A stretch of 64,000 nucleotides of DNA from Haplodiscus bocki (GCA_965655095.1 OZ296651.1:111724001-111788000); one strand, 5' to 3'. Positions 11,071 through 36,600 are shown, counted from the first letter of the stretch. Notes: generated by a model from the letters alone, not told the origin. Program-made: numbers and translations.

Positions 11071-12013
11071 CAAAAAAAACCATAAAAAAAAACAAAAAAT
11101 CAAAATTTGGCGCAGAATTTGATTATGACACTTAAACAGGCGCATGGCGAACGTCGGCAGGAATTTTTGCCTGCAATTCATTGAAAGCAACCGTTCTTTT
11201 AACAAACAACTTCAAGTTGGATGAGTTTCTGGGAAGAAAACTTAAAATTTTTTTCCAAACGAGTACTTTCAAAATTTGACCCTCGAAAGTGTTTTAACTT
11301 TCTCAAAAAACTTGCGCACCAATGTTGTCAATTTGTAGGCAGTAGGATCCCAGATTTTACTTTGTGAAAACAACCTGAATGAAGCAAATGAACCTGTATA
11401 GACTTCAGAAAAAAACTTCCTTAAAATTTCGTATGAAAGTTTGTTCCCATTCTTCTGTTGGCGAAAATTAGAACACTTTCTAGTTTTATTCCTTTTCCCT
11501 GTTTTGCAAAGCGTTCACTGCATCAAACGTCAAGCAACAAACTGAGAGTGTGCACTGAGCCCAATAGAATAGCAAGACATTGTTTCAAAGTTCACAACGT
11601 TCGGTGATGAAGGGATAGTAATGTTTAACATAACAAGAAGTTAATTGCATAAGATAAAAAGTTCACAACTTCTACACGAACCAACAATCCACATTCAAAA
11701 GCAACACGAATTACCACAATGTTCTGAGCTACTGAAAAACATATGTTCACAGAGACAAGTCGTCGGCAGTTGCAAACTAATTTCCATTGTTCAACAACAA
11801 CTATTTTGACATTAGTGTTTACAGTTCTACAAAAACCAACAATTAACCTTTGGGTACTGATAAGTACTGGAAATTTAAACTTTGTCATAAACAAAAAAAT
11901 TGAACGATAGGTTTCAAGATTGAAAAGGAGGAGAACAAATTTTGGTTTGAAAGAACGAGGACAACTTTATCAGTTGACTTTTTTTCCGAAACTTGTTAAT
12001 TTGTGCAAGTTTT

Positions 12014-12045
12014 TTTCAGCAACCACCTTGCGGTCGATTGCGAAA
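12014..12045 (-). promoter_or_regulatory. Bulged stem-loop (GCAA loop) ~100 nt downstream of the OB-fold gene
   Basis: Minus strand folds UUUC-GCAAUC-G-ACC-GCAA-GGU-GGUUGC-U-GAAA. Confidence 0.65.
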
Positions 12046-12125
12046 GGAGAGATTGGTTTTGAAAGCCTTTAAGCAGCTGATGCGGTGGAGAAAGAACGGT
12101 CCTCTGAGGAGTAAGTCTAGATCAG

Positions 12126-13136
12126 CTATCGTACGTTGTTCGGATTGTTAGGAGCACCGACGTTAGCATTCGCATGTTGCAAAGCTGGGGGCTCATTGCC
12201 AATATTGGCGTTGCATGGCACAATGTTGTATTTCAAATTAAAAGGCACTTCAACGGCAGGCGTAATTTTGCAAATGCGGACACGTTGTACGTTTTGTGCA
12301 AGATTTTCGTCTGTGGATCCACTTTTGTAAAATCCACATACCTGCCACCCTCCATTCTCATTTACAAATTGTGACACCTGGTTAACAGCATTCCGCAGTT
12401 GTTGCGAATCGATTGATGCGTATGAACTTCTAATAATTGCTTCGCTGCAAAACATTTTTGTAAGGTTAAGACTTTGTATTATTTCTCCCGTGAGGGAGTC
12501 TTCGTCTTCATTTTCGATGTCACGACTGACAATTCGGGCGCACATTACCCAAGCTGAAACAGGAGATTTCTGTATACAGGGGCATACAGAGTCAATTCGT
12601 TTTTCTCGTCTGTCACACATGAAGCCTGAGCAAGTTGGAGCCACAGCACCTGCTTGTAAGAAGGTGAGGGGTCTGTTTGGCAAGCAAAAGTGAAACATTG
12701 CTGTCGTTGATGGGTGGAGATCTATGGGAATTGGCAACAATGGAATACTGTTAACCACGACTTCCAAAGGAAGAAAGACATGGAAAATTGGATTACTGCG
12801 GTCATTGCCGAGACAAGAATTCGAGAATACAGGTTCTTTTACGTCCACAATTGACCCTACCGTTAACAGAGTGTCTCCGAACAAAAAATAGCTTTTCTGT
12901 GCAGACTCCGCAATCACAGCAAAGCATTCTTTTGAATTGATCTCGCCTAGTATGACTAATCGATCATAACTGGTATCGAGGGCACCTCTCTTGTTTTTGA
13001 TATTTTGCGGTCTAAACAACTGCAAAGGTTTGTCGTATTTCTTAATAACTAGAACGATACCTCTGACGAACGTATTTTCGCTTCGACGCAAAAAATTTGG
13101 TGCTGTTACTTGGGAAGTGTTCACTTGAGTTGTCAT
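12126..13136 (-). CDS. 336-aa element-associated protein, putative OB-fold ssDNA-binding protein with Cys4 Zn site
   Basis: Intact ATG-to-stop ORF in otherwise ORF-poor DNA. The beta-rich N-half (VRGIVLVI..RLVILGE..CFAVI..LTVGSIVDVKEP) has OB-like strand spacing, followed by CSGFMC..CPC. Function is inferred. Confidence 0.7.
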   Translation of the reverse strand: MTTQVNTSQVTAPNFLRRSENTFVRGIVLVIKKYDKPLQLFRPQNIKNKRGALDTSYDRLVILGEINSKECFAVIAESAQKSYFLFGDTLLTVGSIVDVKEPVFSNSCLGNDRSNPIFHVFLPLEVVVNSIPLLPIPIDLHPSTTAMFHFCLPNRPLTFLQAGAVAPTCSGFMCDRREKRIDSVCPCIQKSPVSAWVMCARIVSRDIENEDEDSLTGEIIQSLNLTKMFCSEAIIRSSYASIDSQQLRNAVNQVSQFVNENGGWQVCGFYKSGSTDENLAQNVQRVRICKITPAVEVPFNLKYNIVPCNANIGNEPPALQHANANVGAPNNPNNVR

Positions 13137-13905
13137 AGTCTGAAATCAAACGTGGTTGAAGCTGCCTGAGAACTGAAAAATTGGAACATTCAAAACCATG
13201 CTTTTTCCTTTTTTTAAAGATTCTGTGAACGCATTTTCCTATAAGGTTCAATGAAGTCAACAGGCAAGTAATTTCGGTTTGAAGCATTTATTACAGTCAA
13301 TTAGCGCTATTGCTTCAAGTAAAGCAACTTGTTTATCAAAAAAATCACAAGTTTCTCAATTATTCAGAGTTCTCAAATCTTCTTTATCATTAAGTTTATT
13401 TCATAGAAATGTTATGTTACATTTACAGTTAGCTTACTGTTCAACGCATCACGCTTTATCGATCAGTAACACTCAAGGCAATAGAAAAAAATTGGTGATC
13501 AATGCACTCGAATACACCGTTATTACATCGGTTTTTTTTGTCCACAAAACTTGTAGAAAGTTAAGCATTATAAATTATATTTTCATTGCAGATGTTCCAC
13601 AACTGAAGTTTAATACGAGCTCAAACCTGCACAATGTTTGCTATAACGTTTTTTGCGCGGACAAGAACAAACATTTCGAAAGAAAATTTTATTCAAAAAA
13701 ATATGAACAATCCTTCTAAGAGTATGGCCAAGGTTAGTTGATCACCCTCAAAAATTTAAAATAACAAAAGTTTTTAACAAACAATGTAACTATGGAGTAC
13801 ACTATTTCAGCGAAAACATGAAGGACTTGTGACGACTCATAGCGGACGGCGACCATCACAAAATTGTTCCAATGACAACGAAGCATCAAAACTTCAAAGA
13901 CGTAC

Positions 13906-14085
13906 AGATCACCATGCGGTTGAACTCTTTACAGCGTCATCACAAACCAACTTTAAATTGAATGAGGCACGAAGACAAAGTTTAAAATAATAAACATGTT
14001 TTAATGTACGCCAAAATGCAAGGTGTATGGAACAAAAAATTTTCAAAACTCCAAAGAAGTAGAGGCCACCATGCGGTCGAACTCT
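13906..14085 (-). promoter_or_regulatory. Two bulged stem-loops (13906-13926, 14061-14085) in a ~157-bp duplication downstream of the SGNH gene
   Basis: Minus strand AGUUC-A-ACC-GCAU-GGU-GAUCU and AGAGUUC-G-ACC-GCAU-GGU-GGCCUCU. Confidence 0.6.
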
Positions 14086-14450
14086 TTTACAATTTAATCA
14101 GTAACAAATTACAAATCGAAAGCGACACGAAAAAAAAATTAAAACACTGTCCTAGCAGCGTCAATTAGCCAAGATTATTCGAAATCAAAAAAGCACCTTT
14201 GTTTGTTTTTAATGGTAGCACCAATAAAATTTCTAAATTGTGTTATCATGAAAAAACTACCAAGAGTATTCGAAACATAGGTGCAACGACCAAGATTGTA
14301 ATACCATTTTCAAGAAACTTGCAACTGAAGCCTAGAACAACTCACGGCCAGATCTTCACCATTTCCAGTGCACGTAGCGGTTTTTGCGATGGGAGAGTCC
14401 TAAACAACATTGGTGTTAGAATGGAAGTTTATGGAAAAAACGTAACCCTT

Positions 14451-15324
14451 CTATAGATAAATTCCAAAGAGTTTAGAGCTAGAAACATTCAATTGCTGGA
14501 AAGTTGATATCAAGCGCAAATTACTGGAATCAATACTGTTTTTCAACATTCTAATGTACTGCTGTACACATTTGTTACCTAAAATCCGTCTTTTTATAAT
14601 CCACAGGATGTTGGTCACGCCGTGCTGAGACAAATGCACTCCGTCTTTAAGATTTCTTTCAGATGACATTTTAGATGACACGGATACGTAAGTGTAGTGT
14701 CCAGTGGATGTTCGCAGCATTCGGTTTATTTCTTTCACTGCAAGGAAGCACGGTTGGCTTCGCATTACTAAGCCCAGGCAGTATACTTTGTCGCATTTTC
14801 TCTCGGCAATTCTCACAAGGTTCAAGATATCAAGGAACACCTAATAATAAAACAACAGGAAAAAAGGGAAAACAAATGAAGTACTGCTGAGATATTAAAA
14901 ACCCAAAGTAACGGTTCAAAAATAGTTTGCACGTAGCACTAGTTAAAGCACCAGTAGAAAGACGCAGAATTGAAAACAACGTTTTCCTAGACTTTTACTA
15001 ACGTATTTCAATAAAGGATTTGACAAAACACAAAAACATTTCAAATTTTACTGTCGTCTAATTTGATTTTGCAAACAGTAACCCCATGAAACATCACTTA
15101 AGCTTTACCTGTTCTGGAGTTTCAGCTGGACGCCGGCCCCAATTGGAAAGGCCATTCCCTCCAATGAAAATTGTAATGGATTGAAAGCGGCGCCGCAAAT
15201 TTTCCAGGAAACTCGTTACACGTTGGTCCGCCGCTCTGGCGCCAGGAAAACTTTTAACTGCCAAACTTTCAAGCACACCTTCCAGTTGTACGCCCAGAGA
15301 GTCGGTTATGATCAAATGAGCCAT
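14451..15324 (-). CDS. SGNH/GDSL-like hydrolase, 2 exons (15324-15109 and 14840-14451), ~201 aa
   Basis: Blocks IITDSL, FPGAR and IFIGGN in exon 1; KDGVHL (DxxH) in exon 2. Phase-0 268-bp intron 15108-14841 with CAG|GTAAAG donor and polypyrimidine TTGTTTTATTATTAG|GTG acceptor joins the two ORFs in frame. Confidence 0.85.
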
Positions 15325-15651
15325 AATGATCTGGAAGCACTGTGAAAAACGTCGGTTTCTGCAGCTTCAGGTATCATCCCCGAATACGGGGATACAGTAA
15401 CAAGAGTGCCTCAATCAACAATGTCAAAATTTGTCAGTTAACGTATGATTATAATTGTTTTTCAAAAAAACTTGAAAGTAACCTAATTTCTATTGTCCAA
15501 AATTAACGGCGCATTTTTAAATGGACTGTTTCTAGTGCTTGGAATATTAAAGTCCATCAGATCAGGTTCAGTGAAAGTCAATCCCCTCAAGCTAATGAAT
15601 TAAACAGACACATACAAGTAATTAGCAACAAATCATCTCAACTGCAAAATA

Positions 15652-15809
15652 GATAATGCAACACTATGCAGTCGAAGCATTATCGTTTCCAGCAAAAAGG
15701 TTCATGTTGTTGCACGTGCTACTTGGTACATCACTCTGCAGCCGATGCGGTTGCAGCATAACATAAAGCGAAGTTCACCAATGCACCACTATGCAGTCGA
15801 TGCGTATCG
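15652..15809 (-). promoter_or_regulatory. Three bulged stem-loops downstream of RepHel copy 2 (15652-15684, 15728-15748, 15779-15809)
   Basis: Minus-strand cores GCUUC-G-ACU-GCAU-AGU-GUUGC, GCAUC-G-GCU-GCAG-AGU-GAUGU and GCAUC-G-ACU-GCAU-AGU-GGUGC. Confidence 0.7.
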
Positions 15810-15901
15810 CTGTCAAGGCAAGGAAGTTTGTGAGCAAGTAAAACAATTATCCGAAACTAATCCATAAGTTTTTGAGCGGCTTTCTCCTAAAGTACGACTT
15901 T

Positions 15902-18900
15902 TCAAGACACAAGTGATGACCTGCAGCACACTACTAGTTTCAAATCATCTTCTTTGTGTAGCCAATTTTTTGCCACAATTTCCCCCAAATTGATAGCTGT
16001 GGGAAGTGACACATTTTTCTTTTTTGCGTTGACGTAGTGTGATACCGCATTCAGCCACTCCTTCTCGAATGCTCGGATTCTCTCTGAAGCATTAGTCCAA
16101 TTGAAACCAGTAACATAAGCACAAACCATCCAGGGCAAGCGATTTTGTACTTTGGTGAAGGCGGAACCCAGTCCTGCATTGTGCTCTCGCAAACGACGCA
16201 CTAACGACATAGTGGAGCCAATGTACAGAAGGTGCTGCTGTGGTTCACTTTGGAGCAAGTAACAGAACCCCAGATTTTGAACGGGTAGTTCTCTCATTGA
16301 AGGGGGAAAGGGAGATGCTCTTGCATGATCAATTGTAGGGTCACCAGCGGAACTTTTAGTCAAAATTTCATTCGTGAGTTCAGCCCATTGCGATTTTTTG
16401 CAGACTAAATTCAAAACTGCTCGTTTGTTAGATTCTTTCGATCCAACAAAAGTCACCTGATTCAGACTTCTTACTCGACTCATTACAACATAGAGTTGTT
16501 CGGGAAGCCACAAAGCGAAGTCTTTCGATCCAACTATTTGGGTTGCGACCATCGGAAGCGTTTCACCCATTGTCTTATGAATGGTTGACGCAACAAATAA
16601 TTTTAGTGGAAATTGGATTCGTCTGCAAACCGTTTTGTGGTTTAATCGGTGGGTAACACCAGTTTCTTTGCTGATAACAACACAACGCCATTTGTTTTTG
16701 ATCACAGCAAGCGGTGGAATACTTCGGCAACCAGCTGGTGCTAGAGCAATTGTCACAGAGCCATTCTCAATTGTATCCAAAGAAAGTAGAACACAGAGTT
16801 GACCCTGATACGCGGATATAGATGGCATGTTCACTGTTAGTCGTAAAATGGCACCGGGGTACAGAAACAACGACTGGGGTTCAAGACACTTTTTGTTGAG
16901 AAATTTTGATGTACTTGGCGACGCCTCGGTCCAGTTGTCAGTGCTTGAAACGCACATTTCATCAACTGCCGCATTTTCATAAAATTGCGTACCGCTGTTT
17001 TTAACATCCATTATTTTGTTTTCAGTTGCTTTACGTTCTGCTTGTCGAGTGGCAAAAATTCGAATTCTGTCATTCGGTACGTCTTTCCATGAATGGACAA
17101 AATTGCAACCTTTATCGATTATTTCCCAGATACGCCTCGCATTGCCGTCAGTTTTTGGAGTCGCTGACAACAAAGACAACAGTTCTTGGCCATTTTTGTT
17201 TTGCATCCGAACGAAATTTTCCAGTTTGAGAAAAGTGAAAGTTGTGAGAGGAAAAGAAGAACTCATCAAACAAGATCCTGATGGTGGAGGAAGTTGGAAG
17301 AAATCTCCGGTTGCAATAACAAGTTTCCCACCGAATGGAACATAATTTGCTGTGATAACCTGAAGCACATAATCTGTTGCAGCCCAAAGTTCGCTAGAAA
17401 TCATTGACAATTCTTCCACGAAAAGAACGTGTAGATTTTGCAGAAAGCGGCACTTAATAGGAGATCGCTGTAAGTTGGAAAGGGCTGTTCTGGAGAGCGT
17501 TTCTGCAGAAGCATGCTTTTCCACTGGAAATGGGATGAGGGCATTCAGATGTTTTCCAGCCAAAGCGGCAGATCTTTCAGCAGCCAAAGATGTCACTACA
17601 CAGTTGAGACCTTGGCATAAAGCATATGCAAGCGATTTCAGCACAACGAACGTTTTCCCACTTCCTGGAGGTCCAAAGACAATTTGATGCCTGATGAAAT
17701 TGCAGAGTCCTTCTTTATAAATGTCGATGGAACTCAACAGTTTGTCTAATACACGCTTCTGTTCCGTATAAGAGTTTCCACATTGATCCGGGCTTTTCTG
17801 AATGACTGGTTTCCAAAGTAAAGGGACGGTGATGGTTGCATCCAGCATCGCCTGCTCAGTAGGTAATTGTTTCTGACAAGTGTGAAGAAAAGCTACCATT
17901 TTGCATTTTTCCATACTGATTTGCACTGCTAGTGTTTCTTCGTATTCTTCAATGACACTTCTGTCCAGCACAGGCGGTAGCGCAGCAGCGAAATAAAGGC
18001 TGTTTACTAACAGAGCCTCCGAAAGAACACTGTGAGCCATTAAAAGGTATTTGTCAATTAGTTTCGAGGACCCAGGTACAAAACGCAGTTGTTCCAGCAA
18101 ATAATTTCGTGTTAAATTTTGCACGGTTTTAGCGTTTATGTTGCAGCTTGGAATAATTTTAGCTGTTGTGAAAGCTTCTCTGAAAGATTGCACGTTCAGA
18201 ATGTCCATCTCTGTGTCGAATTCTCCATTAGTCAAGAGCAAATGTAGTAGAAATTTAGTTGGGTTATTCGGCAAAATGTTACTGAAAACAACCACGGCAT
18301 TTTCTTCGGACAACTGCTTCCACTGAGCAACAAATTGTGACGCGTTTTTCGTCACAAGCAACGGAACAATGTGTATTCTCATTTCGCGTTTCAGAATCCC
18401 ATCCCGTCCATCGGTACCATTTGCACGACAGAATTTTACAAAAGCGTCCACAGAACAAGGGCGTAGTTTAACCAAATACCCCAATGCATCAACCCAACAA
18501 CTTCTGCGGAGGCTTCTCTTCAAGAACACTTCATGATTGCTGATGGATTTTTTTGTTTGCGGTTTACAACGAACAAACCAACTGTAGTAATTTTTTAACT
18601 TCGAGACAAACAAAAGTTCAGGTGGGCGGAGTCCAAAAACTGTTACTTTGTCTGGCGAAATAGAGCTGTTTTCAACATCTGCGAGAAGAAAACTTTGTGT
18701 CCTAGTGAACTGCCGGTGCTTTGGGAGTTGTAAAACGTGTTTCCGAACTCGGATTCCTTCCATGAATGTGGCGCCCAACTTAATAATATTGCTAAATCGT
18801 TTTTCAGTGACAATTCCAGATCGATATTCTTTGGGAACAGTTGGCACGTGAACAAAATCGACATTTGTACAGACATACGGAAGTTGTAAGGACCACCAGA

Positions 18901-21900
18901 GACACTCTGTTATGCTGACAACACGACCAGTTACCGATTTTTGTTTTTCATCGCCTCTCAATTTCTTTAGCGAAGCCTGTACCCCAGCTATTTTTTCATG
19001 TGCGATTGGTTCTGTCAAGACTTTGACACTATTTTCTGTTTCACCAGCGACAATTTTGGCAACTGCTCGAGATTCAATGCCGGCTGCATATTTTGCAACG
19101 TAGCGGGGGGCCATGTAGTCGTCACATATTTGAACATTGGTGCTGGATTGTGTCAAAGCAAAAAGAGCAGCGTTCGTTGGTGAATAATGTTCGTTAGAAA
19201 CAGTGGGATAATGATGTTTTCCGGCGGTTAAAGGATCTTTCACTTTTGGGACTAGCGAGTTTTCATCTATGTCTGCTAAATCCATTTCTCGCAGAAGTCC
19301 CATTGTTTCGCAGGAAAAGTTCACAGGAATTTCCTTGAAAGAAAAACAATTCGAAGGAGGATATTTAGGCACACGACAAATTGGTTTCTCCATCCTGTCT
19401 GTCTTCTTATGGCAACGTTTACGACCTTTGGAACAGTTATGGGTTTGATACTTTTGGTAAAGTTCACCCAGATGGAAACGTTCGACTGCGTCCAATTCGG
19501 GGCAACTGACTTCTAAGCCACCCAAAAACGTTTGTTTTGAACAGCAAACACGAGATCGTACATCATCACTAAATTTATCTTCTGGTGTGCACAAAATAGC
19601 ATGCAAGTGAGGAAAGCCAGCTGTCTCTTCCTGCCATTCGTACCTCATCCAAATATGAGACACAGGACCCAGTGGTTTTTCTGGTGAATTTTTCACCCAT
19701 TCCATTACATATTGAGAGGCGCGGTGCCAAGACCTGAGCATGGGCATGAGTTCAGCTTGAATTGCTGCTGAAAGTACTTCCTTCGGAGTGGTTTCTGCGG
19801 GATACATTTCATGCAGTGCTTCAAAGATTTTCCGAATCCCCGGGTGCGTCGATTGACTACAAGTGTAGGTCACAAAGTAGGTTGGATTTTTGTCTCTAAT
19901 TAAAGCCGCAAGTTCGCAGACATTTTTTCGACTTTCCGCACAATCAAACTTGAAAGTTTGAGTCGAAACGAATGAGCAATTACGAGGAGCAGAATTAACT
20001 TCTTGCCATCCTCGATTTAGTATTAGCCTAATGTCACTTTTATGAAGCTGCATGTTCAACAGGCAATCAAACACATACTGCAAATAAGTAGGATTGCAAG
20101 ATGTCAAAAGAGAACCGTCTTTGATTCGAGTTCGAAGCATGTCATCCAAACCAGCGAAACCCAGCTGTTTGTTGTACTTGGATGAATTGTATAAAGCAGT
20201 TGGTATTGCTCCTTGAAAACTGCCGCTGCTAGCTTGACACCAAAAAATCGATGGGAAAAGAAGAGCTTCGGGCTGAATGAGCGGTAATGCAGACGTCGAA
20301 GTAGCTGAAATATTTTCAAGGAAACGTTTTTCTTTCAGGGAAAGGCTGATTGGATTCACGTTACGTCGATAAAGAAGATTGCATTGTGAGTTTAAAAGAA
20401 TATGGAGCGGTAGTTTGAAAGCATCTTCTTTTCGTTCATGATCCACGGAAATCAGTTTTTCATCAGGGTTGGTTTTTAATGATGCCATTATTCTCACGTT
20501 GTCATCTTCGAATTCTTCGTTATTTCTTTCCGGATGAAGAATAAAACTGACAGAAGAACTGTTGCTTGATGCAATCTCAAACGTTTCTGTTGCCGCATCT
20601 GGTTGAATTGGTTCAGTTGCAGAGATGATGTTGGGATCAATAAAATCCCGTGAGGAAGATGATTCCGATACTATAGAAGGGGAATTCGTTTTATTTAAGT
20701 TCTCCAACGGTACTGAATCAATTAAAATACGTCTGTGTTGCTGCTGTAGACCTTCATTGAAGTGACGCTTGCAAACGCAAGAGTAGCATTGCAAATGCGG
20801 GCAGCGCAAAAACGATGCACGACGACATCTACATTGGAAACCACTCTTCCTGAAGTCTCTGGTTAAAGGAATTGTGTGATGTCCACAAATAAAAATACCC
20901 TGACCGGTCAAAGTGCTCAGAAATTTCCACTTCAAATCAATCAATTCAACATTTCTCGATATTTGATAAATCGCAATTGTCCAATATCCCCGAATTAAAG
21001 TTTCCAAGTTATCAGTCGGGGAACCTTCTGTTTTTTTGGCAAATTTTGTACTTTTCTCAATGAGCCAAAACCCTTGAAACTTTCCTCCATGTCTAACTAA
21101 CCACCTCGGTTCTCCCTTGCTGCTTCCATCCTTCGTTCCAACTGCGATCAATTCAAATTCATTGTCGGAAATAATCAGGGTTAACGGTGGTTCAACCTTG
21201 TTCCGCAAACTTTTTGGGGAACCTGTCGTAAAAATGGCATGGGTCATGTTGTACGAAACGTGCTCTCTGGTGGCTGAACCGATATTTTTCCGTTTGTCTA
21301 AGGGAAAGTGTTGAATGGTGTTACAAATTTTTGATAGAAACCTTGCTCCTACAAAACAACAACAGTCGGCTGTTCCTTCTGTTTTGTCATCACTTTTATT
21401 TTGTTCAATTACAGCTGATACAGCTTGTTCGGATTTTTCAACAAGACATAAAACTCTTGCTGTATTCATTCTTCCGGTGCCAAGCAACACTTTCCTGAGT
21501 AAAGTGAACAAAGGCCTAAGTGTCACACTGTAATTTGAAGAGTTCACTAAGGAACGACAAAGTATTGGGGAAACACAAGCTGCAGCCTGCACAATCCACG
21601 AAACTATGCTAACTCTATCTTCTAGAGGAGGTGGAGAGCAACCGTAATCATCATTCCCATGAACGAGAGTGTAACAGCTCAACAGCTCAGCATTGTTGAG
21701 ATACTCTTTTTCATTCTTTTCCACTATTTTTGTGAGGTCCAGGCATGTTTGTAAGTCTATTGAAGTGGCCTGTGACAAACAACTGTTGACTTTCTTATTG
21801 TCCGGTACATAATCCAGCATTCCCGAAGCTACGTCATCAAGGATTTTACCCTGTCTTACCCACTCACGAATCATTGTTTTAATGTCTTCTCTGAAGTGAC

Positions 21901-23959: not shown

Positions 23960-24220
23960 TGTCAAACACAACAGACATTAGTTCAATGGGATCATAACTA
24001 TATGAAAGAACAAAAAGTTACAATACAACCACACGTTGAATAAATTGCAGGCAAATTCGTATAGCAGGTAAATACATCAAATTGTCGTTTGAGCAAAGTC
24101 TTTTGAGGTTCGATTACAAACCGTTGCCTGTCTAGTTAATTTTAAGGGTCGATGCAGCGGAAAAGATAAGCCAGTACGGTAAAAAATCATAATTCGTTTC
24201 CAACCATTCATAAACCAGGC

Positions 24221-24258
24221 GCCTTGGTTTTGCGAACGGAATGGAGCAAAACCAAGGC
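24221..24258. promoter_or_regulatory. Conserved 13-bp-arm hairpin upstream of copy 2
   Basis: GCCTTGGTTTTGC-gaacggaatgga-GCAAAACCAAGGC, 262 bp upstream of the ATG. Confidence 0.75.
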
Positions 24259-27200
24259 TTCCTCAGCAGATTTACTGACTTCAATCAGACACGACGTAAA
24301 CTTTCAGTTTCACAAACAATTTGGAAAAGTGAAAATTTTTGGCAAAAAATCGCAGCAAGTAACTGAAGTTGCGTAAAAGTAAGGCCACAAAAGTTTTTGA
24401 GAGGTTCTTAGTGCTTCCGACTGGTGTAAACCAGGCATCAATTTAATTTAGTTGTTGCAGGTAAAAAATTCTCGTTTTCAAGGGCCTGAAAGAAATCAGT
24501 AACTTTGTTTCACCTATAAAACATGTAGCTTGTTTTAACAGATGTAAAAATGAAAAGGTCTGTCCATATTCCGAAAAAAATGACTTATACAAGACGAACA
24601 GAGACCACATTTAATATAGGAAGAAGCTCATGAGTTCTGTAGTCTAAAAAAATGCATTTAATAACCATTTCATAAAAATGACGGGGGTAGAGAGAATTGT
24701 TGCTACAACAATTTTGTTTCAGTTGGGAGAAACAATGGGAAGCTTTACATTTCCACCATTCTTCGTCGAATTCTCTTTTTCTCTCACAAAATTTGAGAAT
24801 CAAATATTCAGGGCTCATCTCAGTGAACTACAACGTAAACCACTACTGAAAGTTTTTGGGCGTCAAAAGAATGAATTTAGTAATTTTTTCATAACACTTC
24901 AACGTTGGGAACCTTCTTAAAATCAAGAGCTTAGTAACAAATTGTTCAAACTGTATTCGCTGTCTTTTTCATGTCGTTTTGTCAACGTTGATAGTTGAAC
25001 AGGCACACTCATAGAACAGAGGGTAAGTTTCAAGAATCCAGATGGGAAAAACCTTGATGAAAACATAAAAAAATTGGATCAAGGAGGTTCTAAAAGTGCC
25101 ATAGGTTTGAGCAATTCCAACTGCCTAGCATTTTTCGGACACATTTAATCGTTGCGATATAGTTTCCATCTTGAACTTGAAAAACTGAATTGCTTAAAGT
25201 CTTTGATCAATATGGCTATCACGCCGTTGTTTCTTATTGTGTCTTGATTCCGTCTATTGACATTTAGATAAAGATCATCTTTCGGCTGATCTATTACAAG
25301 TAAAGTTTATTTGAAATTTTGAATTTCTGGCCGTGGAGTCATTTCTTTAAATCTGTACTGCAGGAAAAAAAGGAGCCTCAACGTGGACCTCAAGATTCGA
25401 AAGCATTGAGTTTTAAACGTCGAAGCTAGCCCAAGAGAGAAAATTGACAATTAATGAAAATAATATTTCCTAAATGAAACCTTCCACAGCCAGCAATTAC
25501 ACGTGAGAAAACGTTACGCATATTAAACAGATGTTTATAAAGTTAAAATTGAAATACGTTTTAATTTTTAATCAATCACTTTACAAACTTCAACGAGGGT
25601 TTATATATGTCTTTGGTGTAACATATGTCAAACGTGAACAGTCGATCTAGCATAAGGTTGAAGAAGTGAATTGTCATCCGTCCAGCAAAAATGCAAATGA
25701 CTCTGGGGGATCAGAGTATCAGGATTGGAATTGGAAGAAAAACGTTGTGAATAAAATAGTAATATCAACAATAAAAAAAAATAAAATGCTTCAGGAAATT
25801 CAATTATTTAAGATGAGGAAAAAAATCAAACAACGGAAGGACTAATTTGAAACTCGGTAAAATGTTGAACAATTGATAGAATTATACAGCTGAAGAAATG
25901 CTCCGTTAACTGCTCAATCCGGAGTATCGAAACTCATTGATTCCGCGAAAACATGAGAAATTTTGAATTGTCAGTACAGTCTTGAAAGAAGGTAATTATA
26001 TATAGGAAAACAGCATTTCGGAAAATTGGTTGGGTGCGTTTTCCAAATATGTTGACCGCAAAAGCAGCACAGTCATGTCAATCGGAAGTCGTGAATAGAA
26101 AACGAAATTATTTAGAGAAAAGTAGCTCGCACAACCTTGTAAACAAATGAAGAAAGCGAATTAACGGGAAAACATCAAGCCACAATGAAGCGTGCAGTAG
26201 CTTTCACTGATTTTCTAATCAAGTGCTGATTGAACAACAATATTGGTCAGTGAAACTTCATACCACTACAAGGGGAAACGGGACCATTGCCGTCAAGAAA
26301 CGGTTGATTCAATTAAAAAGATAGAGCTACACCGCAGGAAGCCTTAAATCAAGAAATGATTGTGATCAATCGTGTTATCCATTACAAAACAAAACAAAGA
26401 AAAAATAAAAATTACCTACTAGATGCGCAATGCAACGTTTCCCTTAAAAGAAAACCACAGAAGCCCGGAAAAAAATTTTGCATTTGGCGCCGATCAGAAA
26501 TAAGGCATCATACCGTTGCCTCTTTTTGTGAACAGTAAAATTTCATTAACAAAACTATTCAGAAATTAAAATTCGAAAGCGGAGGAAGGGGTGGTTGATA
26601 TTATTTAGACACATTTTTAAAAAAAAAACCAATTTAAGTCATAACAATCATTGGAACCCTTGAAAATGAGTCTCATTGGTATCAGAAACTGGAGAACCTT
26701 CGTCGTGATTTTTGAGGTTCAAACAACGCGTAAGGTTCCTGCAAGCCACCCGTTTCCAAATTCTGATGTTTGTTCATTAAATATTAAGTATCCCGTTGCA
26801 AAGTTCCATTATCATGACTATCCCTGCAGAAGACATTAGAAGCAGCAAAACATTTGTTTCTTCCACCAAGGCAGAAGCCAAACATACCTTTGGAGTGCGT
26901 AATTGAACACCAATCAAGTTTTTTCTGTGTTTAAAGAAACAAAAACAGCTATGAGAGACAAAAAACGATTTCTCTGGAAACAGCTGCAAAAGAAACAGCA
27001 AAAGTTGAGATAACAATTTCGAGTTTAAAACAAACCTTTATTCACATTTATTATTTTAAGTACGAATAAATTATAGAAATGAATTAGACAATAACGCAGA
27101 ATTTTGCTAGCTGGAGAAAAAGCTCAAAAGCAGCTATTAAACTGAAATGTCAACAGAAACATATTTTGTTCCAAGATAACAACTGTTCATTGCTCTGCAG

Positions 27201-27502
27201 ACTTCGGCCCCGTTCGTATTCACCACCTAACTGCACCTTTTCGAACTGCATCGACAAAGCCAGTGCTTCTACAGAAAAACAAAATTACCTCTCATGCCGG
27301 AAACAGAGAAGTTAGAACAACAATCTGGAATCGGGATTAACGATTACTTTGTCAATATTTGGCACCTAAAGGGCATTTTTTGTCTTCGTCACAAAAACCG
27401 ACAACATATTACTTCACGTTGACTGACGCACAATGAAAGGACTACGCCCGTTTGTCGCAGAAAATAAATCTGAACACGAAAAAAACACGGATTCAAACCT
27501 CA

Positions 27503-30220
27503 CGCCCTCTAGTAATTTTCGCCGTCGCCTCCACTGGGTGGTCAGGGGATTGCGCCCCACATTAGTCTTTGCGAGTCGGGGGAGGGGCCCCTTTGCCGAG
27601 CGTTAAAATATAAGAAAAAACAAATATGCACATACGGTATAGGGAATTAGCGATCTCAGCTCCCACCCATACGATTTCGATGAAACTTTGCATGCAGGCA
27701 TAGTTTACAATTCTATGAACAATGATGCAAGTTAGATCATTCTAGCCAATTTGGTTGGGGAATTATGACGGGATGATTCTGTTTTTTGGCCTCATTTTGC
27801 AGTTTTTTACCGAGAGCCCTGCAAATAACCACATGCATTTGGCCAAAACTTTTCGTGTGAAGCAGAATAACTAAGGGCTACACGCATGCAAAAAAATTTC
27901 TACCAACTCGTCATAGGTGTTGAGATATGACGGATCAAATTTGGAAAAAAATGCCAAAAATCGATCATTTCGTCATATCTCCCACACTGAAGTACCTAGT
28001 TTGCGCTCTGGAGTGGCTCCAGTATGAAATTGACTCCATAACTTGAAAGATAATTTTTCGACGATAAAAAATTTTCGGCCATTTTGCCGAAAGAAATGAC
28101 GGTTATGACGAACTTTTCGAAAAAAAAATAAAATTTTCCAAAAACACAGTTTTACTTGTAGAATTCATATCTGGCAATTGTTTTGTTCAATTTCTCTACA
28201 AAGTTTTCTCACTGCAAAGTTTATCTCGAAAATTAACCTTTTTTGTGGGTCGAAGTTTTGAAGTTTTTTGGAAAAACAATCATAATTTGGTCCAAAATTG
28301 AGGAAAAATTTATCAAAAGTCAAATTGTTAATTGCCCCGCCCCGTTGTTTCGTAGACTAGCGGAGCGACACGGAGAAACAACGGGGCCAAAATGTTTGCA
28401 AGCTCCATCATCGATGTCTCATCCAGATCGGTGAAGATTTCACATGCTAAATATCAATATATAAAAAATGCATTTGCAAAAATCATTACTGTGTTGAAAG
28501 AAAACACTAGCAAGTTTGTTCAAGTTTCAGAATGGCATAACCAGTGACCGCCACCTGGTGATTTTCACCGGTGCCTCCACTGGGTGGTCAAGCTTTTTAG
28601 CGACACAAAACTGTTACGAGGCGGGGGAGGGGCCCCTGTGCCGAGTTTCAAAAATCAAGTTTACACTTACACTCAACCCGCCGAAAAGGAGACGATCTCG
28701 AAACCTAACCATACGATTTTGATGAAACTTTGCATGTGGATAGAGTCCGCCGATGTATGAAGATTTTTGGCACTTACATCATTTTTTTTCTTTTGGTTGG
28801 GGAGATATGACGCAATGATCCTGTTTTTTGGCAGGTTTCGAAGTTTTTCCCGCAATATCTCCACACTTTACCCATAGCATTGGACCCAAATTTTTTGTGT
28901 GAAGCACATTTGCTGTTAACTACCTACATGCCAAAATATTTTGGCCAGGGCCTTTTGCCCTAGGAGATATGACCTTTCAAATTTGTCAAAAAGAGGCCAA
29001 AATCGAGCATTTTGTCATTTCTCCCAGGTTGATGTTAAAAAAGTGATGTGAGCTTTCGTCACAACGTGACGGGACCTGTGTCAAATGAAAGATAAATTTC
29101 CGACAAAAAAAACAGTTTTGGTCAAATTGCCGAAAATAATGACGGTTATGACGAAATTTCCGAAAAAAAAATAAAAAACTTCCAAAAAATTAATTTTTGA
29201 CTGCAGAATTAATCCCGATGATCATTTGCGCGATTTCTTCGCCCAAAATCTTCCTCCCATCCGAAAGGGGTCAAGATCAACTAGAAGGTTCACGTAGAAC
29301 AGTTTTCCGAAAGTTTTCTCGAACATCACACAAACGGTTGAAAAACCTACAAAGAAAGGACAAAAATCGAGAATCAAATTTCACATCACCTTCGCCCCGT
29401 TTTTCCGTAGATTAGCGCAGCGTTTCGGAGGAATAACGGGGCAAAAGGGATTTCCACTTTTCTTTACTTTATCTACTTTTTTAAGTTTTTATGACAGAAG
29501 TCTCTAAAAATGTAGTTTTTGACTCAAACTGGGGAAAGTACCTAACATGGAACGTTTCATAGGAACAGTGAAAGTGCATACATTGGCACAAAAAAATAAC
29601 CAGTGGCCGCCAACTGGTGAATTTCACCGTTGCCTCCACTGGGTGGTCACGGGATGGCGCCCTGCATTAGGCCTTAGCGAGGCGGGGGAGGGGCCCCGTG
29701 ACCGAGCGTTCACTACATAGGAAATAACATCTATACGAAGCCTGCTGTAGAAATAGCGATCTCAGCTCTTATCCATACGATTTGGCTCAAACTTTGCATG
29801 CAGGCATAGTTTACTTTTCTAAGAACAGTGGTGCAAATCAGATCTTTGTAGCTCAATTGGTTGGGGAGTTATGACGGATTGATTCCTTTTTCAGGCAATA
29901 ATTTGCAGTTTTTTTGTGCTACCTCCACCAGTAGCCGTACGCATTTGGTCGAAAACTTTTGTGTGAAGCATAATGACTGTGGCCTATACACATGCAAAAA
30001 AGTTTCTACCAACTCGTCATAGGTGTGGAGATATGACGGATCAAAGTGGGTAAAAAATGCCGAAAATTGATCATTTTGTCATAGCTCCCACATTGAATTA
30101 CCTAGTTTGCGCTGTGCAGTGGTTCCAGTATGAAATTGACTCCATAACTTGAAAGATAAATTTTCGACGATAAAAAATTTTCGGCCATTTTGCCGAAACA
30201 AATGACGGTTATGACGAATT
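27503..30220. repeat. Array 2 of ~600-bp modular repeat (unit B 27503-28115, unit A 28541-29155, unit C 29600-30220)
   Basis: Close matches to units at 10448, 9460 and 44984. Linkers carry GCCCCGTT...AACGGGGC hairpins at 28339-28387 and 29394-29442. Confidence 0.85.
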
Positions 30221-33200
30221 TTTGGAAAAAAAATTAAATTCACGAAAAAAACTCAATTTTCATTGAAGAATTCATTTTTCACAAGTGTGCCTTCCAAAAG
30301 CAAATCACAATCCTCTGGTGGCACATATTCTCCTTTGCGAAAGGATTCATCTGAAAAATCCAATTTTTTGCCAATATGTTTGGAAACAAAGCTTAATATT
30401 CAAAACCAAGAGTTCTGACCCGTTGTTTTTTAAACTAAAAAAATTGGATTATGTTCTCGCAAGAAACCACTTTAAAGGATGCTGACCAAAAATATTCCCG
30501 ATATCTTGGAAGATTCCAACAAAAAAGAGTGAGAAAAGCAAACTTCGCTCAGAAAAGGGGAAACAAGACACAAGACGAACTTAACTGCTTCAAGTCATGG
30601 AAATCACCGAAAAAGTCGGGTTTTTGTGCACAACTGGTCCCAGCCATATTTACTGGGTTGCAAGAATTTCAGAAGATATTCAGTTCAGACGAACAGTTCA
30701 AGAAACGAAGAAGTTCAAAACAATCTACCAGCAGACTCAAAATCCGTCGTACATTTTCCGAAAAATCATTTTGAAATGAAAACTACTACTTTAATCATTG
30801 CTTTTTTCGGCGCATTTAGAAAACTATTTTGTTGTTGTCTTTTCCAGGCAGATCATATCAATTGAACTGCCCTCCCTTTGGACTGATCGTGAAGGTTGAC
30901 AAATGTGGAAGAAAACAGGGGCAAAATTTAGAGACATGGTAAAAAAATTCATGTTACTTTGGCGCAGGAGTGTTTGCTGTACCACAGAACACTCATACTT
31001 GGCTGCAAGTTGTTTTTGTGGCACATGAAAGATTGGAATTAAATTAGGAGAATCGAAATATTTCGTTACAGCTCCAGAAAAGGCAACACCTTCAACAAGT
31101 TTTCGCAAAGAGCTTTTTCTTGATCGCAATCCATGACGGTATAAAATGATGGGTACAGTCTAATTTGGGGTTTTTTCGAAGTACATTAGCAGTTCAAATG
31201 AACTGAAAACGAATCAATTCATCTCAATTCAATTCAGTTCTTGTCGAATAAAACAACAATCCATTACTCAAGCAGTATGACGATAACCAGAAAGCATATA
31301 AGGGGAAAAGCGTACTTTTTGTCATAAGAAGCAAAACCATCGACCTTCTGTGCAAACTCATATTCATGCAATCGAAAATTTCGAGCCATGAATCTAAAAA
31401 AGTCACTGCTAACCAAGTGTTGAGAGGGGAACATGTTTTACTGCTATACATTATAGGGCTGTGTTGAGTCAACGAATGGAAAATTGTAAAATTTTCGAAG
31501 GCAACAAATAAGTGAGAATAAAAAAAAACTGCAGACTTCAACAATAATTTTTTTTGTTTCGTCTGTTACACGTTTTCACTCAGCGGATATTGCTGGGTTT
31601 GCTCGGTGGAAAATCTTTTGCAATGAAATGTTGAAGTGGTTCAGAAAAAAAATGTAAGCCACGTATTCCGAGGGTTTATCAAAAGCAGTAACAATTCTAC
31701 AAATACGCATACATCGAGACATCTTCCCAAATAAGAGACACTTCATTTCGCGTTTCCACTAAGTGAACCGCACAAAAATATGTCTTCAAGCAGACTTTTA
31801 TTCAACACCTTTTGCATTCTGTCCGGCATATCGTTTCCAAAGCCAGCACTTGTAATGACGTATCAAAACACGTTCATAATGCGCTGACACCTTGACGGGA
31901 ATGCAAAAACGCACTCGTCCCTAGACCAACTGCTAATTTTGGGGCATTTCCCTTGGTAAATTGTTGGAAAAAATCAGAAGGGAATAATTCCAAAGTCTAT
32001 TGTACTCAGACGACGTATTGAAATGTATAATTTCCAAACAACAGGACCCAAGAGGAAAATGCAGGGACAATCTAAAATCATATTCAGGTCGCAGGTTATC
32101 AGGGAACAGTTATGTAGCACGCTGCATTGAAACCCTAGTTTTCTACTGTAACCATGTGTGTGGCAGTGCCAAAATCATTACATGTATTTAAAAAAACACA
32201 ATTCAACGCATATGTATTCCCATGTATTTCTTTTGGGGAAACTTCATGTAGTTACTACTGGAAATGTCGGGCTAACACCCTGCGTTCATTGCATTTCTGC
32301 ATTGAGAAAATATTGCATGTGCAGCAGAGATAATCCGTGAGACGTTATCAGCATCAACGTTTAGTCGCAGTCCTGAGATGCAAAATCGTTAAAATTTTCC
32401 TCATTTTACACATCGTACCTTTTCTGTTGCTCATTTGAAGTATTGAATGAAACCTGCGTAAAAAAAACAATTGGAAAAACCTGACTTTCGGCCGTATGAA
32501 ACGCAATGAGCAAAAAGCTGCTGGTGCAATTGATCCAAAACTGCCTCATCTCTGTACGACATCCGTTATCAGCTTGTACGAACTTTTAAGGCAATCAAAC
32601 TTTCTTCCTTTATTAAGTACCTCCTAAGCTTGCATAGCCATCGAATGTTTAAGAAATCTCACAATGTTTTTGAACAAATATTTTGATCCAAACAGAAGCC
32701 AACCGAGTAATTTTTCACCGGAGTACTGACTTCGGAAAAGCTATTTTCACACGTTTCTACTGCTATTTTACGTACTTTCACAATTACTTTTCGAAAGGTA
32801 AATCTGCAGAATGTTTATTGCCACACCTTCGGCAAATATGCGTATTACAGTTGTCAATATAGAGAGTCCATAAAATCGAAAGCGGTTCTGATGTCATGAT
32901 TAACATTTTGAAAACGAGGAAAACCTTTCAAATCAGTTTTTTTGCAATGCAAGAAACTTCAGCCACGTCTTTCAAGGTCAACGCTGCACGTTGCAAATGT
33001 CGGATAGAGATCAGCCGTTCTGAGGAACACATCAAACGGTATTTTAAAAAAGAGTGTTGGAAAAGATGACTGATACGCAATGTTTTTGCTCGAAAAAATG
33101 TTCCTGGGAAACTTGTCGCGAAGAATTTCAGATAATACTTCTACCCAGGTTGATCAATGCAGCAAAAACTTTATTTTACAGACTGAAAAAAAACATACGG

Positions 33201-33410
33201 GAAAAACAGAAGTCACCACAAACCAATAAATTGAATAGACAGACTGCATACTTTGAGAACAAATTTTTAAAAGGAACGTTTTCAGTTTATCATCAAAATT
33301 ACAAGGTTTTTATTGAAACACTTAACTAATACAGTATTCAGAACAACTAAAAATTACACCAATCCATATCATTAGGGGTAGTACATGGAGATCAAGGTAT
33401 TGCTTCAGAG

Positions 33411-33565
33411 TGCAACACATACAGTCGAAGCAATCGCTCCACTGATAGGAAGTTGAAAAAAGCGCCCAGGCTCAATTTCGCATCACTGTGCAGTCGATGC
33501 AAGTAATCAAGGAAGCACAATAGCAAATTCCACCAACACTCTACTGTACAGTCGAAGTGGTTGGC
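33411..33565 (-). promoter_or_regulatory. Three bulged stem-loops downstream of RepHel copy 3 (33411-33432, 33480-33500, 33532-33565)
   Basis: Minus-strand cores GCUUC-G-ACU-GUAU-GU-GUUGC, GCAUC-G-ACU-GCAC-AGU-GAUGC and CACUUC-G-ACU-GUAC-AGU-AGAGUG; same number and similar spacing as in copy 2. Confidence 0.7.
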
Positions 33566-33663
33566 AGCAACGCATTCTTGAAATTGTTTTACAGAGCAGC
33601 AGACGGATCGTGAGAAAAGTTTCGCCATCTTTAATTAAATGAATGCACTCTTTCAGAAGGTTT

Positions 33664-36600
33664 TCAACAGGTAGTGGAATCATTGCAACATACTACAAAT
33701 TTCAGATCATCATCTTTGTGCGGCCAGTTGCTTGCAAAAATTTCTCCTAAGCTGATGGCTGTGAACAGTGACACATTTTTTTTCTTCACGTTTACGTAGC
33801 TCGATGCTGCATTCAGCCATTCTTTTTCAAAAACACGGATTCTTTCAGAGGCATTAGAGTAGTTGAATCCAGTTACATAGGCACAAACTTTCCAGGGTAA
33901 TCGATTTTGAAGTTTTGTGAAGGAAGAACTCAATCCAGCATTGTGTTCCCTTAAACGACGCAACAAAGACATGGTGGACCCAATGTACAAGAGCTCATTT
34001 TGTGGCACACTCTGTAGCAAGTAAGAAAAGCCCAAGTTTTGGGTTGGCAAGTCTCGAGTTGTTAGAGGGAAGGGGGATGCATTGGCATGGAAAATAGTAG
34101 GATCACGAGCAGAACTTTTTGTCAAAGTTTCATTTGTCAACTCACTCCACTGTGATGTTTTTCGGACCAATCCTAAAACTGCTGTTCTGTTGGCCTCCTT
34201 CGTACCCACGAAAGGGACTTGGTTCAAACTCCTTACCCTACTCATTACCACATACAACTGCTCAAGAAGCCATAAAGCAAAATCTTTTGACCCCACTATT
34301 TGAGTTGCTACCATAGGCAAAGTTTCACTCATAGTTTTATGAATAGTGGAGGCAACGAACAGTTTTAAAGGAAATTGAATTCTTCGGCACACTGTTTTAT
34401 GATTTAATCGGAATGCAACACCGGTTTCTTTGCCGATAACAACACACCGCCAAGTTTTTCTGATCACAGATAGCGGTGGGATCGTTCGGCATCCAGCCGG
34501 AGCAACAGCAACTGTTACAGTTCCACTTTCAATGGTATCCAAAGAGAGAAGGACGCAAATTTGACTTTGATATGCTGATAAAGATGGTTTGTTGACAGTT
34601 AAACGCAAAATGGCACCAGGGTATAGAAATAACGATTGGGGCTCAAGGCATTTTTTTTTCAGGAATTTACACGCTGTTACGGACGCCTCGGTCCAGTTGT
34701 CGGTGCTCGAAACGCACATTTCGTCAATCGATGCACTTTCATAAAATTTAGTTCCACTGCTTTTCACTTCGGCAATTTTACTCTCAGTTGCTTTCCGTTC
34801 CGCTTGTCTAGTTGCGAAAATTCGAATTCTATCGTTGGGCACGTCGTTCCACGATTGTACAAAATTGCAGTCTTTCTCGATTATTTTCCAAATACGTTCC
34901 GCGCTTGCATCTGTTTTTGGTGTTGCTGATAACAATGACAACAGTTCTTGCCCGTTTTTGTTGCGCATTCGAACGAAATTTTCCAAATGGTAGAAGGTGA
35001 AGGTTGTTAAAGGGAAAGACGAACTCATCAAGTAAGAGCCCGACGGCGGAGGAAGTTGAAAGAAGTCACCAGTTGCAACAACGAGCTTTCCGCCGAAAGG
35101 AACATAATTTGAAGTGACTACCTGCAAAACTGGATCTGTTGCTGCCCAAAGCTCGCTACAAATCATCGACAATTCTTCAAAAAAAATGACATCTAAATTC
35201 TGCAAAATTCGGCTTTTGATGGGAGATCGTTGTAAATTAGACAAAGCTTTTTTCGAAAGTGATTCGGCTGAGGGATACTTTTCAACTGGAAAGGGGATTA
35301 GAGCATTTAAATGTTTCCCAGCTAAGGCGGCAGATCTCTCAGCTGCTAAAGATGTCACCACACAATTCAATCCTTGACAAATAGCATATGCAAGAGATTT
35401 CAGCATGACGAATGTTTTGCCGCTTCCTGGTGGACCAAAAATGATCTGATGTCTTAGGAAAGTGCAATGCCCTCGTTTGTACATGTCAATTGAATTGATG
35501 AGTTTGTTTAAAATTCTACTTTGTTCAAGATATGAGTCTTTGGATTGATCCGGGCTTTTCTGTATAATTGGCTTCCAAGGCACTGGGTTCTCGACAGTTG
35601 CCTCCAACATCGTCTGCTCAATAGGTAATGGTGTCTGACAAGTCTGAAAATAAGCCACCATTTTACTTTTCTCCATTACCAGTTGAATTGCCTCGGTTTC
35701 TTCGCATTCTTCAAGAACACTTTTGTCCAACACAACTGGCAGGGCAGCTGCAAAATAAAGGCTGTTTTTTAAAAAGGCCTCTGCAAGAACACTTTCGGCC
35801 ATTAGCAGGAATGTGTCAATTAAATTGGAAGACCCTGGAGTGAAGCGAAGTTGCTGAAGCAAATATTTCTTTGTCAATTCCTTCACCGTCTCCTCACTGA
35901 CCGTCGAGTCCGACAAAACTTTTGCTGATATGTAGGCTTCTTTAAAAGTTTGAACATTCAAGATATCCAGCTCTGTGTCGAAATCACCGAAGGTTAGTAA
36001 CAGATGAAGTAAAAACTTCGTTGGGTTATTCGGTAAAATGCTACTGAAAACCACTACGGCCTCTTCTTCAGACAAGTGTTTCCAATGGGCAACGAACTGA
36101 CATTTCTTTTTCTTCAGAAGAACGGGAACAATGTGTTTCCTCGTTTCGCGCTTCAGAATGCTATTCCGTCCTTCATCTTTTTTTTCTTGACAAAGATTAA
36201 TGAAAGAGTCAACAGCAACAGGGCGCAATTTTACCACATATCCAATAGCATCAACCCAACAGCTTTTATGGACACTTTTTTTCAAGAACTTTTCATGATT
36301 GCTCATGCTGTTGGTACTTTTTGGTTTCCACCGAACAAACCAGCTGTAGTAGTCTTTTAACTTGGATACGAATAAAAGTTCCGGTGGCCTGAGTCCAAAA
36401 ACAGTTATTTTGTCAGGGGAAATGCAGCTGCTTTCAACATCTTCAAGGAGGAGGACCTGATTTTTCGTGAATTGTCTGTGTTTCGGAAAACGTAATACCT
36501 CGTTACGTACTCGGACGCCTTCAGCGAAAGTGGCTCCAAAATTCGGAGCCTTGTTAAAACGCTTCTCAATTACAATTCCTGAACGATATTCTTTGGGCCC

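Follow-up and report, generated by a model that had tools for sequence, protein, structure and literature searches.

We have analyzed a stretch of 64,000 nucleotides from the genome of Haplodiscus bocki (GCA_965655095.1 OZ296651.1:111724001-111788000; hereafter the window, all positions being counted from its first letter), in which small bulged hairpins follow the genes of transposable elements. The window is a head-to-tail train of rolling-circle (Helitron-like) elements on the minus strand, and the hairpin has the appearance of a control signal not described before, a structured cis element in a transposon clade that has been little studied. Judging from sequence and position, it is most likely a cis signal of each transcription unit in autonomous HLE2-type elements that bear a GIY-YIG domain, acting in the 3' untranslated region (3'UTR) of the mRNA. 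That it is a protein-bound 3'UTR element shared by the mRNAs of the transposon is the reading we prefer, at somewhat less than even odds (about 45%).

Covariation and position of the hairpins

A preliminary description of the window had listed nine stem-loops, all on one strand, behind four genes. They are found where it had placed them: the pattern TCRRCYGYANRGT matches eight times versus 0.12 expected, always on the minus strand, which is the sense strand of the elements, and never on the plus strand. The core of these hairpins (class I) is UC-R-ACY-GYAN-RGU-G, and it folds as a lower stem of up to 7 bp, a single bulged purine (G or A), an upper stem of 3 bp (ACY/RGU) and a GYAN tetraloop. 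A covariance model (R1, to which all the bit scores refer) was built from a gap-free 33-nt alignment of eight copies. Over the 64 kb it recovered these eight at 30–37 bits and the next best match had 13 bits, in agreement with the claim that the window holds no other copies. The ninth copy listed before is decayed.

The copies belong to two elements. As the window is a train, what had been described as a single element with three co-regulated mRNAs is really a pair of elements of different families, E2 and E3, and only the first has all three genes; no second copy of the SGNH-like or OB-like gene was found in the window by tblastn, so E3 is devoid of both. In E2, three hairpins follow the RepHel gene, at 15778–15810 (36.9 bits; ACU/AGU upper stem with a GCAU loop; the minimum-energy fold departs from the consensus), 15723–15755 (30.3 bits; GCU/AGU, loop GCAG; a competing fold is preferred) and 15653–15685 (35.1 bits; a long lower stem, with the consensus as minimum-energy fold, z −1.7). 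Two more follow the SGNH-like gene, at 14058–14090 (35.2 bits; ACC/GGU, loop GCAU) and 13901–13933 (31.6 bits; bulge A), and a single one follows the OB-like gene at 12015–12047 (32.1 bits; ACC/GGU, loop GCAA; −11.4 kcal/mol, z −1.9). The latter is identical in a 95% copy despite a differing flank. After the RepHel gene of E3 there are two strong copies, at 33533–33565 (30.9 bits; loop GUAC) and 33475–33507 (36.2 bits; loop GCAC; z −2.9), and then the decayed one at 33407–33438 (core 33416–33428), where one base has been lost in the 3' half of the core and the score drops to 12.1 bits (E 0.68). All nine are on the minus strand. The flanks had been considered not conserved, which needs a correction for the two SGNH hairpins, that sit in a 102-nt tandem duplication with 75% identity; hence the flanks are not wholly unrelated.

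The distance from the stop codon to the first hairpin is 96 nt for the RepHel gene of E2, 103 nt for that of E3 and 83 nt for the OB-like gene, very much the approximately 100 nt that had been proposed for three of the four genes. For the SGNH-like gene it is about 260–360 nt, depending on the gene model.

Since the folding energies are marginal, the case for a structure rests on covariation. Among the eight strong copies 86% of the cells pair, six of the ten pairs vary on both sides, and the observed covariation score was reached by none of 500 shuffles; when the partner was slid by 1–3 columns the pairing fell to 27–55%. Adding three copies from a locus of another assembly (L043, see below), 88% of the cells pair (29–52% in the slid controls) and 28 double-sided changes are counted versus 9.0 ± 2.5 in the shuffles. 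Two of the pairs of the lower stem are kept in all 11 sequences, through four and five pair types respectively. The compensatory changes reported from inspection of the stems are therefore confirmed.

Hairpins across the genome and in other assemblies

The strict 14-nt core TCGACYGCAYRGTG has 165 matches in the 1.5-Gb genome versus 10 for the reversed control, i.e., the motif is above the genomic background, a point on which its significance had been made to depend. About 86 of the first 100 sites listed are located in train clusters (coordinates read by eye), and the isolated rest is close to the control count. A looser 13-mer is at background level (2847 versus 3318 for its reversed control) and alone would have misled; none of 30 random loose-core sites had stems, the best reaching 18.5 bits. 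Almost all the best 149 matches of R1 (24–37 bits) are in train regions, with three unplaced, and many of them are found 60–300 nt after matches to the C-terminus of RepHel and on the same strand. The RepHel families concerned are 100, 95, 92, 81, 79, 75, 72, 70, 62, 56 and 51% identical to that of E2. This confinement of core and model matches to the trains indicates that the motif is a property of the transposon clade and not a signal used throughout the host genome.

The upper stem comes in two subtypes that go with the gene, ACU..AGU after RepHel and ACC..GGU after SGNH and OB, and this applies to E2, to L043 and to other families of the genome. The copies have thus been inherited together with their genes and have not been homogenised.

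A protein search for relatives yielded 14 RepHel proteins of comparable length, most of them with the same Pfam domains, and we analyzed their contigs. Three of the contigs, from three assemblies, were tested and had no more than 70% DNA identity to anything in this genome, so that those assemblies represent other species. The hairpin sequences of the cross-family comparisons come only from loci of other assemblies. A metagenome scaffold of the 95% family (L053) has six hairpins in the same 3+2+1 places as E2. L043, of the 62% family and from the same assembly as one of the tested contigs (L044), carries class I hairpins 172 nt downstream of RepHel, behind SGNH, and 180 nt downstream of OB, in the last case the intact OB gene of the preceding element. 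L043 also carries an identical 18-nt block, TGTTAAATTTACATTGTT, at 18393–18410 and 19983–20000, which is 27 nt past the RepHel hairpin and 77 nt past the SGNH hairpin, and in E2 TTACATTGTTTGTTAAA is located 112 nt past the second SGNH hairpin. These blocks may be a second piece of the 3' module; a relaxed search for TGTTAAATTTACATTGTT in the window gave seven sense and three antisense matches, a difference that is not significant.

More distant relatives have hairpins of other classes. In L044 (53% family) the hairpin is NG-[U]-RGUUG-UUCGU-CAACY-CN (class II), with 16 copies in a 50-nt tandem array that starts 57 nt past the RepHel stop, two after gene 2 and one 64 nt past the OB stop. Among 41 distinct class II copies from L044, L046 and L047, the last with up to 30 copies in tandem, the two pairs below the bulged U are formed in 36–38 by UA, GC, CG or GU, and in a model without the bulge the first position pairs in none of the 41. 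The class II core is at background in the H. bocki genome (3 versus 2), so this class belongs to the families of other species. Just past the array of L044, at 18652–18665, the sequence TTCGACTGCAT is equal to the class I core over its initial 10 nt, the 3' half being absent, and may represent either a relic or a chance resemblance.

In L049 (36% family) the hairpin is AUCC-[U]-GGGCG-U6-CGCUC-GGAU (class III), found four times after RepHel and four times after gene 2 within a duplicated module of about 300 nt, and in L045 it is ACC-[A]-GGAUAC-ACA-GUAUCC-GGU, found twice after OB. L048 and L054 have unbulged hairpins after RepHel and a long perfect stem after gene 2, of 14 bp followed by U8 in L048 and a similar one of 17 bp with no U run in L054. 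Stems of the type GUUUUGGC were also seen after the OB gene in L046 and L047, the long stems after gene 2 in L048 and L054 being of the type GUUUUCAC. In three of the different hairpin types of these distant relatives one base again bulges from the 5' strand. The rule is therefore that every gene is followed by sense-strand hairpins, which usually bulge a single base in the 5' strand and whose sequence is set by the clade. The phenomenon extends further than first described. As had been supposed for class I, none of them corresponds to a known family: no relevant match at E ≤ 1 was found in Rfam 15 for window positions 11500–34000, L044 18000–24000 (class II) or L049 8600–10534 (class III).

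The elements and their genes

The elements of the train are joined by the junction TGACCACC/CAGTGGAGG, at about 44990, 29607, 28548, 27500, 10455 and 9457. The string GACC-N5-GTGG is common to the junction and to the class I core, which was judged a coincidence, as the pairing registers differ. E2 (10447..27500, about 17 kb, minus strand) is bounded by the junction and moves as a whole unit: the span of approximately 10447–27500 is common to four other genomic copies, which identifies the 17-kb element as the mobile unit. At least eight copies exist near 100% identity and at least 19 at 92–93%. Its order is 5' region, RepHel, SGNH, OB and a 3' region of 630 nt. E3 (29610..44990, about 15.4 kb, minus strand) was delimited by the junction sequences.

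The RepHel gene of E2 (15902..23971, minus strand) codes for 2689 amino acids with an OTU-like N-terminus, Helitron_like_N, a PIF1 helicase and a C-terminal GIY-YIG domain, as deduced from its open reading frame (ORF) and Pfam. That of E3 (33664..41877, minus strand) is broken into three ORFs and has about 72% nucleotide identity to it. The usual nuclease of Helentrons is of the AP type, and insertion between T and T is usual in HLE2-type elements. From their predicted domains, the hosts of the hairpins are GIY-YIG-carrying HLE2-type (Helentron-type) elements, whose RepHel combines Helitron_like_N and PIF1 with the added nuclease; a GIY-YIG domain has one report in an HLE2 family, from Selaginella (PMC11417382). 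The SGNH-like gene of E2 (14350..15324, minus strand) has introns, with ORF pieces at 15094–15324 and 14451–14840 and an approximate 3' end, and homologous exons are present in L043. The OB-like gene (12126..13136, minus strand) codes for 336 amino acids with the motif Cys-x4-Cys-x10-Cys-x-Cys, and is 43–61% identical in three related loci. The nearest Atlas clusters of this protein are ssDNA (single-stranded DNA)-binding OB folds of the POT1/CTC1/RPA/MEIOB type, which we take as a lead only; there was no match in Pfam or in a profile search of PDB sequences, and the AlphaFold model was poor (pLDDT 32) and was not used.

Between the large elements there are gene-less units of 1 kb (27505–29607, 9465–10455 and 44981–46069) that share their first ~25 nt and last ~630 nt with them. 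One of these units has at least 42 full-length copies with 88–100% identity on many chromosomes. They bear a perfect 13-bp hairpin of their own, GCCCCGTTGTTTC/GAAACAACGGGGC, at 28339–28387 and 45821–45869. The R1 model found no match in the 1-kb derivatives, and given that they are abundant and have the common termini, the class I hairpin is probably not needed in cis for transposition.

The SGNH unit is an indel between families. It corresponds to window positions 13634–15650 and includes the gene and both its hairpins; an 80% RepHel family lacks it as a block and has the OB region, with 91% identity, directly after the RepHel hairpins. The homology to E2 restarts there at 13634, about 55 nt past an AATAAA at 13693 that lies in the SGNH unit after its hairpins, and 267 nt past the second of these.

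Other features of the window were also recorded. A first copy of RepHel (1137–6033), that of the element E1, is split into a pair of ORFs that overlap, and the window ends before its 3' end is reached. Upstream of all three RepHel starts there is a perfect 13-bp hairpin, GCCTTGGTTTTGC-N12-GCAAAACCAAGGC, at 6190–6227, 24221–24258 and 41987–42026, separated from the start by about 160 nt (E1), 250 nt (E2) and 160 nt (E3). Its stems are identical across three families that are only 66–72% alike in coding DNA, and the loops vary. Besides, a 272-nt inverted repeat with 93% complementarity and 4 nt between the arms is located at 51700–52247, and the right-hand third of the window (48–62 kb) has a strong positive GC skew and low G+C.

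Function of the hairpins

Two readings had been offered from the beginning, a 3'UTR element shared by the mRNAs and ssDNA hairpins read by the HUH Rep. They have found partial support, and the indirect evidence favors a role linked to the genes: in several families, and in other assemblies too, it is the stop codons and not the element ends that the hairpins follow on the sense strand; the abundant gene-less derivatives do without them; and, unlike the subterminal hairpin, they are located 1.5–5.3 kb inside the true 3' end (about 10447 in E2, with hairpins at 12015–15810). In the same way, the loss of the SGNH unit as a block that ends just past its AATAAA fits hairpins placed inside a complete transcription unit.

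As for the way in which a 3'UTR element might work, the apical part (bulged purine, upper stem of 3 bp and GYAN loop) is conserved, and the lower stem varies yet stays paired. This is the pattern that would be expected if a protein read the bulge and the loop and needed only a helix below them. Such binding might tune 3'-end formation, stability or translation of the mRNAs of the element, among which the 8-kb RepHel message bears the most hairpin copies. The fact that the sequence is replaced in distant families suggests, speculatively, a binder more likely to be encoded by the element or to evolve fast than to be a conserved protein of the host; of the proteins encoded by the hairpin-bearing elements examined, only RepHel is common to all.

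Several observations weigh against a protein-bound 3'UTR element. The contigs of four sequencing runs that contain this sequence cover introns and spacers evenly and have no splice joints, so that they behave like DNA and are silent on expression, and the run search found no RNA run with the sequence. No RNA-binding domain was identified in any of the element proteins. The hairpins are weak (−6 to −11 kcal/mol, z −0.2 to −2.9), and the consensus fold is not the minimum-energy structure in two of the nine copies. When E2 is compared with the 95% family, the hairpin regions reach 94.9% identity and the rest of the non-coding DNA 92.9%, a difference without significance, and both SGNH hairpins have changed at conserved positions. 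The more distant L048 and L054 bear unlike hairpins after different genes, and this pattern means that one hairpin per element is not universal. Polyadenylation hexamers are absent from the interval that separates the stop of RepHel from the start of SGNH, and downstream of the OB stop the nearest one is 636 nt away, although with only ~0.8 hexamers expected by chance this scarcity is not significant and the hexamers are uninformative. Finally, in Helitrons the sense strand is also the one expected to be displaced in rolling-circle transposition. The preference of G-U pairs for the sense strand, which had been noted before, is real (11 G-U pairs versus 3 A-C mismatches), but for this reason neither it nor the strand bias separates RNA from ssDNA.

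A signal in ssDNA is the strongest of the alternatives, although we consider it unlikely. The hairpins would fold on the displaced sense strand and be bound by RepHel through its HUH domain, or organize the OB-like protein, and serve as sites for pausing, protection or priming of the complementary strand. Hairpins are indeed recognized by HUH enzymes, in some cases with a base outside the helix, as in IS200/IS605 TnpA and the REP-associated transposases. All the copies are carried by the strand whose displacement is expected, the clade specificity of the hairpin sequence is what co-evolution with an element protein would give, the element encodes a probable ssDNA-binding OB protein if its Atlas neighbors are a guide, and there is no significant extra conservation of the hairpins within the family. 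With DNA parameters the hairpins still fold (−3.3 to −5.8 kcal/mol), but the z-scores are mostly weak for RNA and DNA parameters alike and cannot separate one from the other. There is also a precedent in Helraiser, whose 3' hairpin is reported to be a transposition terminator (PMC4778049). On the other hand, the abundant non-autonomous 1-kb derivatives share the termini and do without the hairpin, the hairpins are different from both the subterminal hairpin and the junction, none of the truncated or mosaic copies examined starts or ends at a hairpin, and a DNA role leaves the tight link to stop codons without a reason.

If the hairpins act in RNA, they could also be passive, any stable stem after a gene being enough to block 3'-5' exonucleases or to aid termination with no specific binder. 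The variation of hairpin sequence and size in distant families would be understandable in this way, and several hairpins precede U runs like those of intrinsic terminators (class II in L044, the 14-bp stem with U8 in L048). However, class I stems are weak, and their bulge, upper stem and loop are kept in other assemblies and in families with as little as about 51% RepHel identity, over a lower stem that is free to vary; 14 nt of constrained sequence are not expected of a passive stem, and we regard this explanation as quite improbable.

Harder still to sustain is the origin of the hairpins as fossil transposition terminators, each of them a former 3' end that became internal when read-through captured the next gene. 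Helitrons are described as bypassing the 3' hairpin and capturing downstream DNA (PMC4778049); one hairpin cluster per added gene is the layout that this would predict, and the SGNH unit is indeed an indel between families. But there is no terminal cleavage sequence beside the hairpins and the hairpin of the present terminus is a different one. Relics of this kind would be expected to degenerate, but the cores have been maintained, with compensatory changes, in different families and assemblies, and two or three tandem copies, let alone the 30 of L047, are unexpected of one old end. That the hairpin is a repeat due to chance or to neutral processes, or a 3'UTR motif in general use by the host and carried along by the element, would agree with the weak z-scores and the background level of the loose 13-mer, but is largely refuted by the covariation, the conservation in other assemblies, the lack of stems at random loose-core sites and the count and clustering of the strict core, and the genome counts leave no room for many host 3'UTR hairpins with this core.

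A known structure with the same layout is the coat-protein operator of RNA phages (MS2/R17, Qbeta, PP7), with a lower stem, a bulged purine on the 5' strand, an upper stem of 2–4 bp and a small loop, and likewise with a conserved apex over a free lower stem. The phage operator is however a single copy at a start codon, and here single hairpins or small tandem groups, of unrelated sequence, are found after several genes of a eukaryotic DNA transposon. Binding by the dimer of the levivirus coat protein depends on specific adenines of loop and bulge, where the present hairpins have GYAN and G or A, respectively. No levivirus coat-protein domain was found by Pfam in any of the element proteins, and the likeness is one of form only. 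The iron-responsive element, with a 5' bulged C and an upper stem of 5 bp, resembles the class II and III layout but differs in the loop sequences; this element and the histone mRNA 3' stem-loop are UTR hairpins bound by proteins, and neither was matched here in Rfam. Motifs of the tRNA-like, Rbfox (GCAUG), Smaug, Roquin and K-turn kinds were dropped, as their consensus does not fit.

Imperfect hairpins with extrahelical bases that are located after genes and act as single strands are also known in bacteria, the REP/BIME palindromes, of which REPs are tied to a HUH transposase, and the attC sites of integrons. The latter have 57–141 nt and are cut by a tyrosine recombinase, and REPs are scattered genome-wide, while the hairpins described here are confined to the transposon. 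An attC- or REP-like ssDNA hairpin was rejected, given that the boundary of the SGNH indel is 267 nt past the nearest hairpin and no hairpins above background were found outside the elements.

Among the Helitron-like elements themselves, HLE2 ends have been described as short terminal inverted repeats plus a 3' stem-loop by HELIANO (PMC11417382), and Helentron/DINE-1 elements as having subterminal inverted repeats, a 3' palindrome and central repeats (PMC4067079). The 3' subterminal hairpin of Helitrons and Helentrons is also short, on the sense strand and specific of the family (PMC4067079; PMC11417382; PMC4778049). It is single, about 10–40 nt from the 3' end, and kept by non-autonomous derivatives, whereas the hairpins of the train are internal, found per gene, grouped and absent from the derivatives. 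The distance of 1.5–5.3 kb and this absence speak against their being the terminal hairpin. The central repeats of Helentron/HINE/DINE-1 elements form tandem arrays in HLE2-type elements as well (PMC4067079; PMC7492417), and the arrays of ~50-nt period after RepHel in L044, L046 and L047 look similar, but the literature consulted presents the repeats of those elements as satellite-like and carried by non-autonomous elements, and not as bulged, covarying hairpins at gene ends. A limited search of the literature on Helitron-like elements, which is not proof of novelty, found no description of hairpins after each ORF.

A broader scheme can be proposed, although we hold it rather unlikely, in which each clade would have its own operator-like hairpin after every gene, with a reader encoded by the element itself, RepHel being the most plausible one. 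This would make a private post-transcriptional regulon or, in case that the hairpin is read as ssDNA, a cassette mark similar to attC for a eukaryotic HUH enzyme. If this were true, the differing sequence classes with their mostly 5'-bulged layout would be the trace of co-evolution between protein and hairpin.

Descriptions of DNA transposons usually deal with their ends and their transposase, and little is known about the control of their own genes. The clade studied here has a conserved, structured signal at the end of each gene. If it is an RNA element, it would be a compact and portable 3'UTR module common to several mRNAs, and would offer a candidate protein-RNA pair that could be studied or employed as a tool; in the case of an ssDNA signal, it would be a new kind of internal signal in rolling-circle transposition. 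Either way, the hairpin provides a simple marker to annotate the gene units of these 15–18-kb elements.

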